A stretch of DNA of 64,000 nucleotides from Prasinococcaceae sp. CCMP 1430. Taxonomy: Eukaryota; Plantae; Prasinodermophyta. Below the pieces are notes generated by a model. The model was not told the DNA's origin, made no database searches, and was given only the letters and a program-made list of their open reading frames with translations. This document shows, piece by piece, positions 1-5,095 of the stretch; positions within the stretch are counted from its first letter, which is position 1; the number at the start of each line of letters is the position of its first letter. The position numbers and the translations under genes are program-made. Location of the stretch: contig RQSC01000031.1 of NCBI GenBank assembly GCA_013416795.1, positions 75,193 to 139,192 of the forward strand. Direction: 5' to 3'.

Positions 1-2087
1 TCTGCCGGTACCATGCAAAAGAAATGTCCCGACGCACGAACAACCTCGCGCAGGCCACCGCGTGCGCCCCCAGCAAAGAGCCATGGATGCTTGGAGCGCA
101 ACATTGGCAGAGCGAGGTCAACATACGCACGCGATCGCGACATTGCGCCGGAGCGTTTCACGCGGTACCAGCTCGAAAGCCCACCAACTTTGTGTGTCTG
201 CACCCCTCGCGCGAGCATGGTCAGCCAGAGGGAGTAATCCTCGTTGCCGAAGATCATGTCTAGGGGATAGCCCCCAGCCGCTTCAAAGACGCCTCTACTG
301 AAGACAGTTGTAACCGGAAATGGGCCGCGCTGCGCCGCGTAACTGAGAGTCATATTCGGAGCTAGAAACCACACGCTCCCGACAGCAGGGTCGTCGCCAA
401 AGGTTGCCTGATCGGCGTACAGTAACTGCGCGCGCCCGTGCGTCGCGCGCAGCCCTAGCGCAACCCGCGCAAGAAAATCTGGCGCGAGCACGTCGTCTGC
501 ATCCAGTGGCAGCACGTAGGGCGCGCGTGCCAGCTCGAAGATAGCGCGATTGCGAGTAGCTGCTAATCCCAAGTTGGACGCGGAGCGCTCGATAACAATC
601 CGGTGCTGATAGTGAGGGCACCCCGAATGCTCATCACAGCCGTATCGCGCGCGTGCGGAGCTCGCTTTTGTTTCGAGAGTAGAGGAGAAGTCGTCGATTG
701 CGCCCTGCGCTACGTCGGCGCATGTCGCCTTCGAGAGTCTGCCGTCTGCAGGAGCTTTGTTCCGCGGCAACATGACGCCATTGCTCGGCACGGGCGGGCT
801 ATGATCGTCGACGACAATGAGCTCCCAGGCGACGAAGCTCTGCGCGAACACCGATGCAACGGCGTCGCGGACGAAGCGTTCCTGAGCGTAGCATGGCACG
901 ATGACGCTGAAAAGCGGACGCTCGGGAGACCACGTCTGCCCATCCCAGCCGTACCAAGCGGTTTGTTCTGCGGTTGTCAACTTGATAGAGGGCTGTGGAA
1001 ATGTGCAGCGAGGCGTAGTACTGGTGTCCATCGGGGATTCGGATGCAGGGAGATCTTCTGAATTCCAACAGCAGCTTCGTCGCTTGCATTGGCGCGCGTT
1101 GAAGCCCTGCTCTGGAGAGCCACAGTCCATTCGTCTTCCTGTCGCAAGAGCAGCAAATCCATAACCTATCCCTGGCGCGAGCACGCGCGCGCTGGCATTG
1201 GCGTGCGGCTCGTGTGGCATCCGACACACGCCATGCACGGGCACGTCTGCTTCTGACTCCTTCATGTCCATCGCAGAGATTCTGCGCACGGAAGGCGCGT
1301 AACACCTGGGGTATCCCTTCTCGCGCGCCCCAACCAGAGCTCTGGCGGCCTTCGCAGCAGCTCGCCTGATGCTCCCGAGCATGCGTGTGGCCAACGAGAT
1401 TTTCAGGTCGCCAGCAGTGGCCCCGCCGCCCGTAGCCGTCATGCTCCGCGTCTGGAGTTGATGCTGTCCTTCATGCCCCCCTCCGCCCGTGCTTTCCTGC
1501 TGCATGCTGCCAGAGGGCAGTCCTTCTGTGTCCTCGCCCCTCCAGCAGCACCCGACGGCTAAGCAGTCCTCTGCGCGTATTCCGTCAAAGCCGCAGCCCG
1601 CTGCGGTACGCAAGTCGTAAGAGCTCTCGTCGCAGTTGCCTAGATCTGATTCGACGCGACTAATCCCAGCAACAACACCACTCTTGCCCCCCGCTGACAG
1701 ACGCACGCGCGAGCTGCCGCGTGCCGTTGCTTCGCTGTCGGTCAAGACAACATCTGCAGCTTTGGAGGTCATGAAGAGCCGTTCGCGCGAATAGCCCACT
1801 TGCACTCCACATCGCGTGTCCAACACAACGTCACGGTGTGCTGCTGTTGCACCCGTGCCTCCTGACGGCCTGCTTGAGGACACTGTGTTGCCTTCAGCAG
1901 GCCACGACACCCAGCGTCGCGACAGTGTGGGACCTAGCAGAGCTGTGAACGGTGAGGCGCTGCCTAATATCGCAAGCAACAGCAATGGCGCGGCTGCAAG
2001 CATCAACAGCAGCAGCAATAGCAGCAGCAGCGCATGCACTCGCGGAGGCGCGCACCGCCACGAGCGCCGCGCCGCACGCCGCCGCAT
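1..2087 (-). CDS. Type II membrane glycosyltransferase family 2 with two trefoil (P-type)-like Cys motifs; runs off the left window edge
   Basis: Manual translation of the minus strand gives an open frame from ATG 2087 to base 1, missing from the ORF track because no stop lies in the window. It reads MRRRAARR, then a Leu-rich TM, CGFDGIRAEDCLAVGCCW, RMDCG...C...CCW...PRCTFP, then the GT2 motifs FSVIVPCYAQERFVRDAVASVFAQ..WELIVVDD, NLGLAATRNRA and LPLDADD. Confidence 0.85.
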   Translation of the reverse strand, partial: MRRRAARRSWRCAPPRVHALLLLLLLLLMLAAAPLLLLAILGSASPFTALLGPTLSRRWVSWPAEGNTVSSSRPSGGTGATAAHRDVVLDTRCGVQVGYSRERLFMTSKAADVVLTDSEATARGSSRVRLSAGGKSGVVAGISRVESDLGNCDESSYDLRTAAGCGFDGIRAEDCLAVGCCWRGEDTEGLPSGSMQQESTGGGGHEGQHQLQTRSMTATGGGATAGDLKISLATRMLGSIRRAAAKAARALVGAREKGYPRCYAPSVRRISAMDMKESEADVPVHGVCRMPHEPHANASARVLAPGIGYGFAALATGRRMDCGSPEQGFNARQCKRRSCCWNSEDLPASESPMDTSTTPRCTFPQPSIKLTTAEQTAWYGWDGQTWSPERPLFSVIVPCYAQERFVRDAVASVFAQSFVAWELIVVDDHSPPVPSNGVMLPRNKAPADGRLSKATCADVAQGAIDDFSSTLETKASSARARYGCDEHSGCPHYQHRIVIERSASNLGLAATRNRAIFELARAPYVLPLDADDVLAPDFLARVALGLRATHGRAQLLYADQATFGDDPAVGSVWFLAPNMTLSYAAQRGPFPVTTVFSRGVFEAAGGYPLDMIFGNEDYSLWLTMLARGVQTHKVGGLSSWYRVKRSGAMSRSRAYVDLALPMLRSKHPWLFAGGARGGLREVVRASGHFFCMVPA

Positions 2088-2780
2088 CGCCGCCAAGCGC
2101 GCGCAGCGGCGAGCACAACGAATCCCGCGCGCGACGGCGCCGCAGGCGCGGCCCCGCTTGCGTGTGTGGCGCGCCCCGCGCTCGCGCCCGACCCCTCTGT
2201 CCGGCGCAGGGCGCCCGCGCGCGCTGCTGCTGCCTGCCTTCGGTGCTGCTGCTGCCAGCGCCTACGCGCCAAGACATCACACAGTGTTGAGCACATGTCA
2301 AAATCAAAGCCTTTTTGCCCCACCTTGTTTTTCTTTGTTGCTGAGCGTCATCATACTCTGCCGCTCCTTCCACGCGGCGACGTCAAAGCCACACTCCGTC
2401 AACCTTCGCATCAACTCACACGACGCGAGCACGCAAAGGCGCCCATGGGTTCCCCGGGGCGCGAGGCGCCAGCACCGGTGTGTGCTGCACGCGGTCGCGC
2501 CGGCCGCGCCCGCGCAGCGCGCGCGGAAGGCGAGGCCCGTCCTAGGCGGGGACGCGGACGCCGCGACCGAACTGTGTTGTGGCCGGAGGATTACGCCACT
2601 CCGGCTATCTCGTGCACAGGCGAGCGAGCGGCGCGCCAGGAGGTCACAACGGTATTACAGATTGGTAGTTGCATTAGAGCAGACAGATACAAGCAGAGTA
2701 GCATGTGAGTGCTTGGCAATTTTGGTGTGCGCAGGGCCTCGTTCGCGACGTCGCGTCAACGGCATGGTGGCATCGCGTCG

Positions 2781-4330
2781 TCAGGGTGGCGGTAGACTGA
2801 ACGGCGGCGTGGCATCGAGCGGCTCGTTGAGCTTGCGGCGCATGAAGGCATAAATGTCGGCGTGATTGCGCGCGCTTGCCTCCTGCACGGTGATGAAGGG
2901 CCACCGCGCCCACTCCTTCTCGAAGAGCGAAGCGCCACGGGCACCAACGAAGTAGCCGATCAGCGCGTGCCGCTTGGCGGGCTCGGTCCACACGAAGACT
3001 TCCCTACCGATGTGCGCCAGACTGCCGTCGAGCACATCGACGTCCCCGCCGGGCGCGCCATGATCGGCGGCGCCGGCGATTCCAATGGCCCCACCGCCAG
3101 CCCGCTCCTCGACTGCCATGCGCAAAAAGCCGGCAGCGGGCACCAGCATGAGCGAGTGCACCTGCAGGCACTCCTTGCAGCGGAAGCGCGTGGAGAAAAC
3201 GCTCAGGAAGGCCTCCGGGTGCCGCCGCTCCATCTGGACCAGGTAACTGCGCAGGAAGGGGCGCGGCGCGTGGCTGGGGTAGTAGCCATCGCGCAGCAGC
3301 GTGCGCTCGCACTGCTTGCAGCCCGCGCAGCCCGCGCGCACCGCGTAAGCGCGAGCGGTGGGCCCGCCCTGTGCGCCTTTGAAAAGGCGCTTGGCGACGT
3401 GCAGCCAGCTCTCATCCTTGTGCTCATAGCCCGTCATCCATCGCAGGCCGCCAGCACGCGGGAAAAACACAGGGGGCTCGATGGGGCGCGTGATGAGCAT
3501 GTCGTCGTTGAGGAATACAAAGGCCTCCGCGAGCCCCGGCACGCGGTGCAGGTAGGCCTCCTTGGCGTACGCGCTGAAGTATGGCCAGTTGGCAAGCGCC
3601 TCGCTCGGGTACATGTCACGAGAGAGCACCACGCGCACGTCTGGCATAGCGGCCACCTCAGCGGGCACCTCGTCGGCGTAGTCGACAATCACGTGGATGG
3701 TGCGCAGGCCCAGCAGGTTTCGCCGCGCGAGTTTCACGCTGAGAGCGAACACATCCATATCGTCGTCCTCCTCTTTCGCCGTGCCGTTGATGGGCACGTT
3801 GCGGACGATCCCATGGTGCTCCTCCGCGAGCGCCGCCGCATAAGCCTCGCGCACGCTCGGCGACGATTCGCGGTTGTGGTACGTGTACACGGCATCGTAA
3901 GACAGCCAATCGGCCTTGTAGATCGGGTAGGGACAGGGCAGCGAGAGAGCAGGCGAGGGGAAGGGAGGGGTGGGGTGTGTGTGGGGAGTGTCGTGTGTGA
4001 GCGCGAAGACCAGGAGACCGCTCGGCCGCGCACTCGAGCGCCTGGCTGCGATGCGGGCGGTGCAGGCACCAACAGTGCGTCTCGATGGCCGTGCCCTGAC
4101 GTTTGCGCCACGTACCTGCTTCTCCGCCGCGAGGGTGACCGGCGGCCCAGCGCTGCACTCAGCCCGCGCGCCGTACGCGCGGCGCGGCACGCCGTCGATC
4201 AACAGCTGTGGCGCACCCACAGCTGCGCCAGCACCTGAGGTGAGGCACGCCAGCACGCCGATGACGGCGAGCGCGCCACAGGCGGCACACGCAGCACGCG
4301 AGCGCACGTAACGGTCCACGACGCCCTGTG
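2781..4330 (-). CDS. Stealth-family hexose-1-phosphotransferase; start codon unresolved
   Basis: Motifs DAVYTY and AYLHRVPGLAEAFVFLNDDMLITRPIEPPVFF match Stealth CR1/CR2. N-terminal TM segment ALAVIGVLACLT. Probable in-frame intron 4115-3915. Confidence 0.85.
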
Positions 4331-4419
4331 CCGAGGAGAGCGCCGACGCCGCAGGAGCTGCCAGGGGGGCCGCGCCCCTGCCTGGCTGCGGCGCTGCGGC
4401 GGTTGCGCCCTGCAGCGCG

Positions 4420-5095
4420 GCGGCCGCAGAGGGCGCCGACGCCGCAGCGGACGAGCTGGCCAAGCTGGCCGTGGGCGACAAGGAGAAGGTGCGTGCGCGT
4501 GCGCGTGCGCGGGCGACCGAGCTTGCATCTCTACCACCCCGCCCGCCCTTTCTCTGCTGCTCTCGCTCACGCACGCACGCGTGCGCGTGCGCACCTGCAC
4601 ACGCCCACACTGGTCGCTTTACCCACGCCCCGCGCATCCGCGCAGAAGAGCGGCAAGGGCGGCAAGAAGAAGAAGAAGGAGAAGGAGCTCGTGGTGACCA
4701 AGGCCGTGCGCAACAAGCGCAAGTGCATCACGACCGTGACGGGCCTGCACCATTGGAAGGTCAAGCTGTCGGAAGGTGCGTATTGGGGACGGCCGTGCGC
4801 ATGCATCTCTCCCCGAGTTACCACCGCCACGCACACGCGCACACATGCCTGCGTGCATTCGCACACGTCTCTGACCCGCGCGCGGGGGCGCTGGCACGCA
4901 GCGTCCAAGCTCTTCGGAAAGAAGTTCGCATGCGGCGCGAGCGTCACCAAGAACGCGTCGCAGGTGGAGGAGATCGACATCCAGGGGGACTGCCTGTACG
5001 AGGTCACCGAGCTCATTCTCAAGAAGTACCCCGATGTCGACAAGGACGCCATCTACTGGGTGGAGGACAAGAAGAAGCGCAAGGCGGACCTCTGA
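4420..5095 (+). CDS. DENR: Density-regulated protein (SUI1-domain reinitiation factor); first exon not found
   Basis: Spliced peptide RNKRKCITTVTGL...KLSEASKLFGKKFACGASVTK...EEIDIQGD is typical of DENR/Tma22. Introns 4489-4645 and 4776-4901 (GT..AG); the second was checked to restore frame. Confidence 0.85.

Follow-up and report, generated by a model that had tools for sequence, protein, structure and literature searches.

Two trefoil modules joined to a GT2 glycosyltransferase domain in a transcribed gene of an early-branching green alga

Introduction

Trefoil (P-type) domains have mostly been studied as lectins of animal mucus and egg coats and as add-ons of GH31 glucosidases; what would a pair of them do on a glycosyltransferase of a marine green alga? 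This question is raised by a minus-strand gene at the beginning of a 64,000-nt stretch of DNA from Prasinococcaceae sp. CCMP 1430 (contig RQSC01000031.1, positions 75,193 to 139,192), here called the window. A sequence-only reading of its first 2087 nucleotides had proposed a type II transmembrane anchor, two trefoil-like Cys motifs and a DxD-containing GT2 domain in a single long frame, an architecture that it did not know from green algae. We find this architecture upheld by hidden Markov model (HMM) matches, by a family profile and by RNA evidence; from N to C terminus, the protein comprises an Arg-rich tail, a Leu-rich anchor, a predicted lumenal stem, two divergent trefoil modules, a GT2 domain and a Cys-bearing C-terminal extension. 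With somewhat more confidence than doubt, we read the gene as encoding a real, expressed type II trefoil-GT2 enzyme that carries putative built-in carbohydrate-binding modules in the lumen.

Reading frame and transcription

The frame extends on the minus strand from position 2087 to position 3, comprises 695 codons without a stop when translated, and continues open past the window edge. The earlier reading had remarked that a frame of 695 or more codons was missing from the program-made list of open reading frames; this is so, and the sole reason is that the frame crosses the window start. Going upstream from the ATG at 2085–2087, one meets no further in-frame ATG before a stop 58 codons away, which makes this ATG the first possible start. 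A 96%-identical full-length allele (P0001, locus L001, on a TARA ocean-metagenome contig) gives a complete protein of 928 residues, of which the coding sequence in the window (3–2087, minus strand, as are all features below unless noted) holds residues 1–695, with about 233 further codons expected beyond the window start. The coding assignment is based on the open frame, this allele and gap-free RNA contigs, and the frame stays open across 928 codons in many independent ocean contigs.

Two small sequencing runs from the same organism, whose library type is only guessed, yielded contigs of 2860 nt (X1) and 3056 nt (X2) that match window positions 1–2133 and 1–1996, respectively, each collinearly with no mismatches and no gaps; the X1 transcript contig extends at least 46 nt upstream of the start codon. 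Because these runs skip a GT..AG intron at about 4776–4901 and leave the neighboring DNA mostly uncovered, including most of 2134–4428, we take them to be RNA-derived. Contigs from a true metatranscriptome (X4) cover 401–551, 589–739, 1166–1346 and 1592–1797 at 95–99% identity. The gene is transcribed and has no intron in the 2.1 kb of it that lie within the window. Splicing does not remove the Cys region, since the X1 and X2 contigs run through both Cys clusters without a gap.

Membrane anchor and trefoil modules

Residues 19–42 (1962–2033), which follow an Arg-rich 18-residue cytoplasmic tail, form a Leu-rich membrane anchor and are the sole strongly hydrophobic stretch of the frame (Kyte-Doolittle values up to 3.1), in keeping with the anchor and the type II topology predicted before. 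The Cys-rich parts are all separated from the short basic tail by the anchor, and the 12 paired-looking Cys downstream of it, all assigned to the modules, are enough for two complete trefoils.

Both Cys clusters score above the curated gathering cutoff of the Pfam Trefoil model PF00088 (21 bits), module 1 with 26.6 bits (E 5.6e-6) and module 2 with 34.3 bits (E 2.2e-8). The two motifs had been placed at about 1635–1542 and 1135–995, and we locate them at residues 151–185 (1533–1637) and 318–364 (996–1136). Module 1 also matches porcine TFF2 among solved structures (phmmer E 4.2e-6), and the profile of the family described below (A1) matches both trefoils of TFF2 (E 2.9e-13), TFF3 (E 3.6e-6), TFF1 and the trefoil of ZP1. 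For alignment and modelling the two modules were treated separately, as a joint MAFFT alignment placed all modules on motif 1 and then skipped ahead to the final Cys of motif 2; the AlphaFold2 models were built from small family alignments.

The core of module 1 (1533–1637), with Cys152, 165, 175, 180 and 181 as C1 to C5, is defined by the PF00088 and TFF2 matches, by alignment to relatives and by a predicted local distance difference test (pLDDT) of 73–88 in the AlphaFold2 model. Between this core and the last Cys lies a 73-residue insert in loop 3 (1314–1532), made up of a disordered part rich in Gly, Gln and Thr followed by a predicted long helix; no relative has it in the module-wise alignment, and it is kept in the RNA. 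We considered an in-frame intron within this insert and ruled it out, since both X1 and X2 are gap-free there while the same runs splice another intron. The module ends in YPRCYAP (1293–1313), where Cys262 is taken as C6 because it aligns to the last Cys of the family in its C.FP context. In the model, much of the insert has pLDDT values below 50 and is followed by a helix at model residues 84–110; the Cys262 segment forms a strand (117–119, pLDDT about 78) that probably pairs with the only other strand, that of the CCW segment (37–39).

Module 2 (residues 288–364; 996–1226) begins with Cys288 as C1, followed by a 29-residue insert in loop 1, Cys322, 334, 339 and 340, a longer loop 3, and Cys361 within PRCTFP. 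All six Cys fall in the columns of the family's module 2 alignment, in which C.FP is invariant, and the module aligns to the trefoils of TFF3 and of lysosomal alpha-glucosidase (GAA) including the last Cys (PRCTFP versus PWCFFP). It has Asp321 as the canonical acidic residue before C2. Its AlphaFold2 model (core pLDDT 54–87) consists of one short helix and three short strands; their order is that of trefoils, whose canonical fold has three loops, a short helix and a sheet of two strands. Compared with the canonical spacing of about 10, 9, 4, 0 and 10 residues in C1..C2..C3....C4C5..C6, the C3-C4-C5 segment is canonical in both modules, while the gaps are 12 (C1–C2), 9 (C2–C3) and 80 (C5–C6) residues in module 1 and 33, 11 and 20 residues in module 2.

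GT2 catalytic domain

The catalytic domain starts at residue 391 and is cut by the window edge (3–917), its start agreeing with the position of about 920 proposed earlier. It scores 59.5 bits against PF00535 (cutoff 23.3) and 33.9 bits against PF13641 (cutoff 27), and it carries two lineage-specific inserts (residues 431–455 and 480–503). The nucleotide-binding Asp motif is IVVDDHS (residues 424–430), and the previously recognized DxD motif, for binding of metal and nucleotide sugar, is LDADD (residues 528–532; 492–506), whose Asp columns are invariant in 15 family members. In FGNEDY (residues 613–618; 234–251) the residues from G to Y do not vary among family members, and the acidic pair is a candidate catalytic base, judging by its position about 85 residues after the DxD motif. 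All invariant motifs of the family are kept in the window protein: VVDD, D-A-D-D, YADQ, RGP.PV, GNEDY and SWYR. These features predict a lumenal, inverting, metal-dependent transferase of the GT-A type.

Against solved GT2 enzymes of the GT-A fold the family profile gave E-values from 6.8e-22 to 1e-11, matching K4 chondroitin polymerase (2Z86), GalT1 (5HEA), TarS, TarP and SpsA (1QGQ); the best structural relatives of the catalytic half are bacterial chain-building or elongating enzymes. The N-terminal nucleotide-binding half and the DxD motif are shared with these enzymes and with heparosan synthase, several of which build polysaccharide chains, whereas the bacterial proteins lack both the trefoil modules and the C-terminal Cys-bearing extension of the family. 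Low identity, together with matches confined to the first 110–135 residues of the domain, precludes a transfer of donor and acceptor from them. A feature search of the whole frame in the ESM Atlas returned only generic GT2 clusters.

A family of trefoil-GT2 proteins

An exhaustive phmmer search with the full-length query found no full-length relative above 50% identity, the only hit at that level being a C-terminal fragment. The closest GT2 relatives are 43–45% identical in the catalytic domain and carry trefoil motifs, and Pfam detects Trefoil together with GT2 in P0025, P0027, P0030, P0045, P0123 and P0181–P0186. A word search with one relative gave about 13 clusters of the same layout, mostly metagenomic proteins: a basic tail and anchor, a compact module 1 with four Cys, a module 2 with six Cys, the GT2 domain some 20 residues later, and a C-terminal extension in which several Cys are conserved and a QP..C.GWLW.AL segment occurs. 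When the fragments alone were compared with PF00088, 12 of 12 copies of module 1 and 12 of 15 copies of module 2 matched. BLASTP aligned the window protein to P0025 without a break from module 2 through the GT2 domain into the C-terminal segment (E 1e-55), and in a maximum-likelihood tree it lies on a long branch inside a clade with 100/100 support that holds all trefoil-GT2 members. The clade and the unbroken alignment together indicate that the fusion was ancestral to the family, and we accordingly see in the sequences a conserved family design and not a chance fusion.

The C-terminal extension of the window protein (residues ~700–928, mostly beyond the window start; P0009:765-989) is found family-wide with its conserved Cys and the same segment, has extra inserts and a longer tail than in the relatives, and gave no match in Pfam. 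We rejected the idea that it is a decayed form of the GT32 domain of the long relatives, as similarity is limited to the QP..C..W.W.AL segment and Pfam finds no match. That GT32-type domain (PF04488) lies C-terminally in six relatives (P0025, P0030, P0045 and P0184–P0186); no match of the Gb3_synth type appeared. GT32 is also the family of the alpha-1,4-GlcNAc transferase with which animals produce the TFF ligand. P0130 (1511 residues) has GT2, GT32, a Fringe-like domain and a weak C-terminal trefoil in series.

One relative (P0173; L005, transcript MMETSP0929) is labelled Ostreococcus sp. RCC789, a label that we treat with caution: its transcript has a GC content of only 45–50%, which we take to be low for an Ostreococcus nuclear gene, and could stem from a low-GC chromosome or from a different organism present in the culture. 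On L004 (4425–6300), in an NCBI eukaryotic assembly, the gene of P0182 has two genes for eukaryote-type nucleotide-sugar transporters as neighbors at a distance of about 2 kb, which by their Atlas features resemble CMP-sialic-acid transporters, a neighborhood that hints at a small Golgi glycosylation cluster. A giant-virus or phage origin of the family was considered and discarded, as IMG/VR held no match to P0177 and the family alignment found there only generic GT2 sequences (22–31% identity over full-domain matches), none of which reached the trefoil region.

Natural variation and constraint

Most amino-acid changes relative to the L001 allele fall in the inserts. In the 73-residue insert there are 12 nonsynonymous and 3 synonymous differences, and the ratio of nonsynonymous to synonymous polymorphism (pN/pS) is about 1 to 1.4 in the inserts versus about 0.3 in the module 2 core and the GT2 domain, on small counts from this one allele; the module 1 core has 2 nonsynonymous and no synonymous differences. 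The contrast in constraint between inserts and cores is suggestive, and the long trefoil-loop inserts appear to behave as flexible, fast-evolving linkers. At residue 164 of module 1, where the window protein has Gly, several ocean variants carry Asp (Gly164Asp, window 1596–1598), which restores the canonical acidic residue before C2.

Comparison with known systems

The family resembles the TFFs, especially TFF2 (porcine spasmolytic polypeptide; 1PSP, 2PSP) and TFF3 with its ligand (6V1C), in having tandem P-type modules of the pattern C..CG[YF]PGI..C....CC[FW]..C[FY].P and in retaining, before C2, an acidic or amide residue at the position that contacts the terminal sugar. They differ in that TFFs are short peptides secreted by animals, while the modules here belong to a 928-residue membrane enzyme of a green alga, have Arg in place of the Trp before C6 and accommodate loop inserts of 14 to 73 residues. 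An N-terminal trefoil on a carbohydrate-active enzyme is also found in GAA (GH31), where it provides a secondary substrate site proposed to aid processivity (PMC5653652), and in the green alga Cymbomonas as well as in several protists a GH15 glucoamylase bears a trefoil-like domain (PMC5741210); these are hydrolases with one trefoil each, unlike the glycosyltransferase with two described here.

In concept the window protein is also like the ppGalNAc-Ts (GT27), which are type II Golgi GT-A transferases whose built-in lectin recognizes glycans on the acceptor, a parallel already drawn in the earlier reading. The ppGalNAc-T lectin is C-terminal, has the ricin B beta-trefoil fold, which is unrelated to the P-type trefoil, and has an experimentally established function, where that of the trefoils is putative; the window protein has no GT27 or ricin match in Pfam, and the likeness is one of analogy only.

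The earlier reading's view that this architecture was not known from green algae stands in part. The Cymbomonas GH15 trefoil is published (PMC5741210), and proteins with both Pfam domains are already in the databases, unnamed, among them the one labelled Ostreococcus; our literature search turned up no description of a glycosyltransferase carrying a trefoil. Carbohydrate-active enzymes with appended binding modules are known as such; the apparently new element is a transferase with two trefoils, which occurs in this early-branching green alga and in a small protein family of marine eukaryotes.

Proposed function and rival explanations

We propose that the gene product is a type II glycosyltransferase of the secretory pathway, 928 residues long and crossing the membrane once, whose GT2 domain would use a nucleotide sugar and a divalent metal to transfer one sugar with inversion to a glycan acceptor in the lumen of the Golgi or endoplasmic reticulum. 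The two trefoils would act as built-in carbohydrate-binding modules that keep the acceptor or the lengthening product close to the active site, comparable to the secondary substrate site formed by the GAA trefoil, and the product would probably be a glycan or glycoprotein in the wall or matrix of this walled alga. A lumenal setting is supported by the Golgi-type nucleotide-sugar transporter genes next to that of one relative (P0182) and by the 12 Cys past the anchor. A lectin-like role in acceptor or product binding is plausible from the residues retained. In TFF3 the side-chain contacts to the sugar are made by Asp20 and Trp47, with most ligand contacts made through the backbone (PMC7221086), and in GAA the sugar site comprises D91, P125 and W126 (PMC5653652). 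An acidic or amide residue precedes C2 in 11 of 12 intact module 2 sequences (including that of the window protein) and in all 12 of the relatives' module 1 copies.

Several observations weigh against this proposal. The Trp platform of TFF3 and GAA is replaced by Arg in both window modules (Arg261 and Arg360) and is not conserved in the relatives, and module 1 of the window protein has Gly164 at the canonical Asp position, so neither module has the canonical TFF sugar site of Asp/Asn before C2 with Trp before C6; the modules may have some other sugar specificity. Cys181Tyr (window 1545–1547), found in 5 of the 14 cluster variants carrying module 1, removes C5 of that module and, under the canonical trefoil pairing 1-5, 2-4, 3-6, would leave Cys152 unpaired. 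Three relatives (P0173, P0180 and P0174) have a degenerate module 2 that PF00088 does not match, and the Golgi location is deduced from topology only. Structural comparison of module 2 is coherent but weak: 12 of 14 Foldseek rows were trefoil domains (TFF3, TFF1, TFF2, MGAM, SI, GAA and ZP1), with a best E-value of only 0.32 and a TMt of 0.51 to TFF3 at a weak E-value (at least 0.3), and VIA gave a weak Z of 2.2 for the trefoils of MGAM and GAA. With module 1, Foldseek returned no match and a VIA-wide search returned only long-helix look-alikes of the insert; because the long helix of the insert dominates such searches, we regard this failure as uninformative and do not count it as evidence against a trefoil fold.

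The lost Trp platform also speaks for a different view of the modules, to which we give a sizeable minority share of belief, that they are not lectins and serve instead as a rigid disulfide-braced stem or spacer, or mediate oligomerization or the docking of a partner and thereby place the GT2 domain in the lumen. Such a role would sit well with the large loop inserts that are tolerated, with the degenerate module 2 of the three relatives, and with the fate of the C1–C5 pair, which is polymorphic here through Cys181Tyr and absent from module 1 in 11 of the 12 relatives having that module (P0186 keeps the double Cys). It accounts less well for the family-wide conservation, in both modules, of the acidic or amide residue before C2 and of the CG[YF]PGI segment, which lines the TFF sugar cleft. 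As the contacts of TFF3 with its ligand are mostly through the backbone, loss of the Trp need not end binding (PMC7221086), and the characterized trefoil contexts in the papers cited, TFFs, GH31 and GH15, are all glycan-associated (PMC7221086, PMC5653652, PMC5741210). On balance the residue patterns favor a carbohydrate-binding role with a specificity unlike that of TFFs, with a purely structural role as a serious rival.

Even where the modules do bind glycans, their ligand might be a glycoprotein cargo or what the enzyme itself makes, and binding would then serve the retention, sorting or regulation of the enzyme, for example by autoinhibition or Golgi retention, and would not feed the active site. 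Golgi enzymes carry localization and regulatory determinants between anchor and catalytic domain, which is where the modules lie. Their tandem, divalent arrangement also recalls TFF2, and cross-linking of mucins by TFFs acting as divalent lectins has been reported (PMC7221086). In the compact relatives, however, module 2 is only about 20 residues away from the GT2 core, which fits direct catalytic cooperation better, and we think this explanation improbable. That the trefoil matches are chance Cys-rich look-alikes, or that the gene is a decaying pseudogene or an assembly artefact, could draw on the nearly neutral evolution of the long low-complexity inserts and on the weak structural matches, but we hold it to be very improbable given that both modules exceed the Pfam cutoff and the family profile finds TFF2, that the frame is transcribed and open in many independent ocean contigs, and that the GT2 motifs are invariant, with a pN/pS of about 0.3 across that domain.

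Genomic neighborhood

The adjoining gene upstream, on the same strand (2781–4637), encodes a 618-residue protein of the Stealth family of hexose-1-phosphate transferases, with 46.8 bits to Stealth_CR2 (cutoff 39.4) and a weak CR3. It also lies beside the trefoil-GT2 gene in the TARA contig L001, while L003 and L004, contigs of relatives, have different neighbors, so that a functional link to the Stealth gene is conjectural. Beyond it, a 126-nt GT..AG intron on the plus strand (about 4776–4901) is removed in the X1 and X2 contigs; a second metatranscriptome (X5) has a near-identical joint, with 127 nt skipped and one extra letter, and plus-strand transcript exons are seen at 4696–4773 and 4900–5000.

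In the leader of the trefoil-GT2 gene, between positions 2133 and 2134, the window lacks a 57-nt GC-rich segment that is found in the L001 allele and the X1 contig, where 28 loose letters match the segment of L001. The missing segment is either an indel polymorphism or an assembly collapse, and the coding sequence is untouched by it. GC content ranges from 0.61 to 0.75 in the window, in agreement with a published value of 69.8% for the presumed host genome (PMC7455551).

Significance

Binding modules attached to carbohydrate enzymes are a common theme, which limits the significance of one more instance. If the modules bind glycans, the family would nonetheless represent a second, independent solution to the problem of a transferase with a built-in lectin, besides the ppGalNAc-Ts, and would widen the ligand range and evolutionary depth of trefoils. 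The paper on the presumed host's genome describes a thick wall whose chemistry is unknown and reports that the wall synthases usual in plants are missing (PMC7455551), which makes lumenal GT2 enzymes such as the window protein candidates for building that wall.

A bolder version of the proposal, which we consider unlikely as it stands, is that of a "writer plus reader" synthase: the trefoils would grip the nascent chain during processive elongation of a wall or matrix polymer by the GT2 domain, which in the longer relatives would cooperate with the fused GT32 domain, and the change from Trp to Arg would adapt the modules to an algal glycan of anionic (uronic or sulfated) character. If true, this would offer the first molecular handle on the chemically unknown Prasinoderma wall, and it would suggest that the P-type trefoil began in early eukaryotes as a module appended to carbohydrate-active enzymes, long before the mucus peptides of animals.

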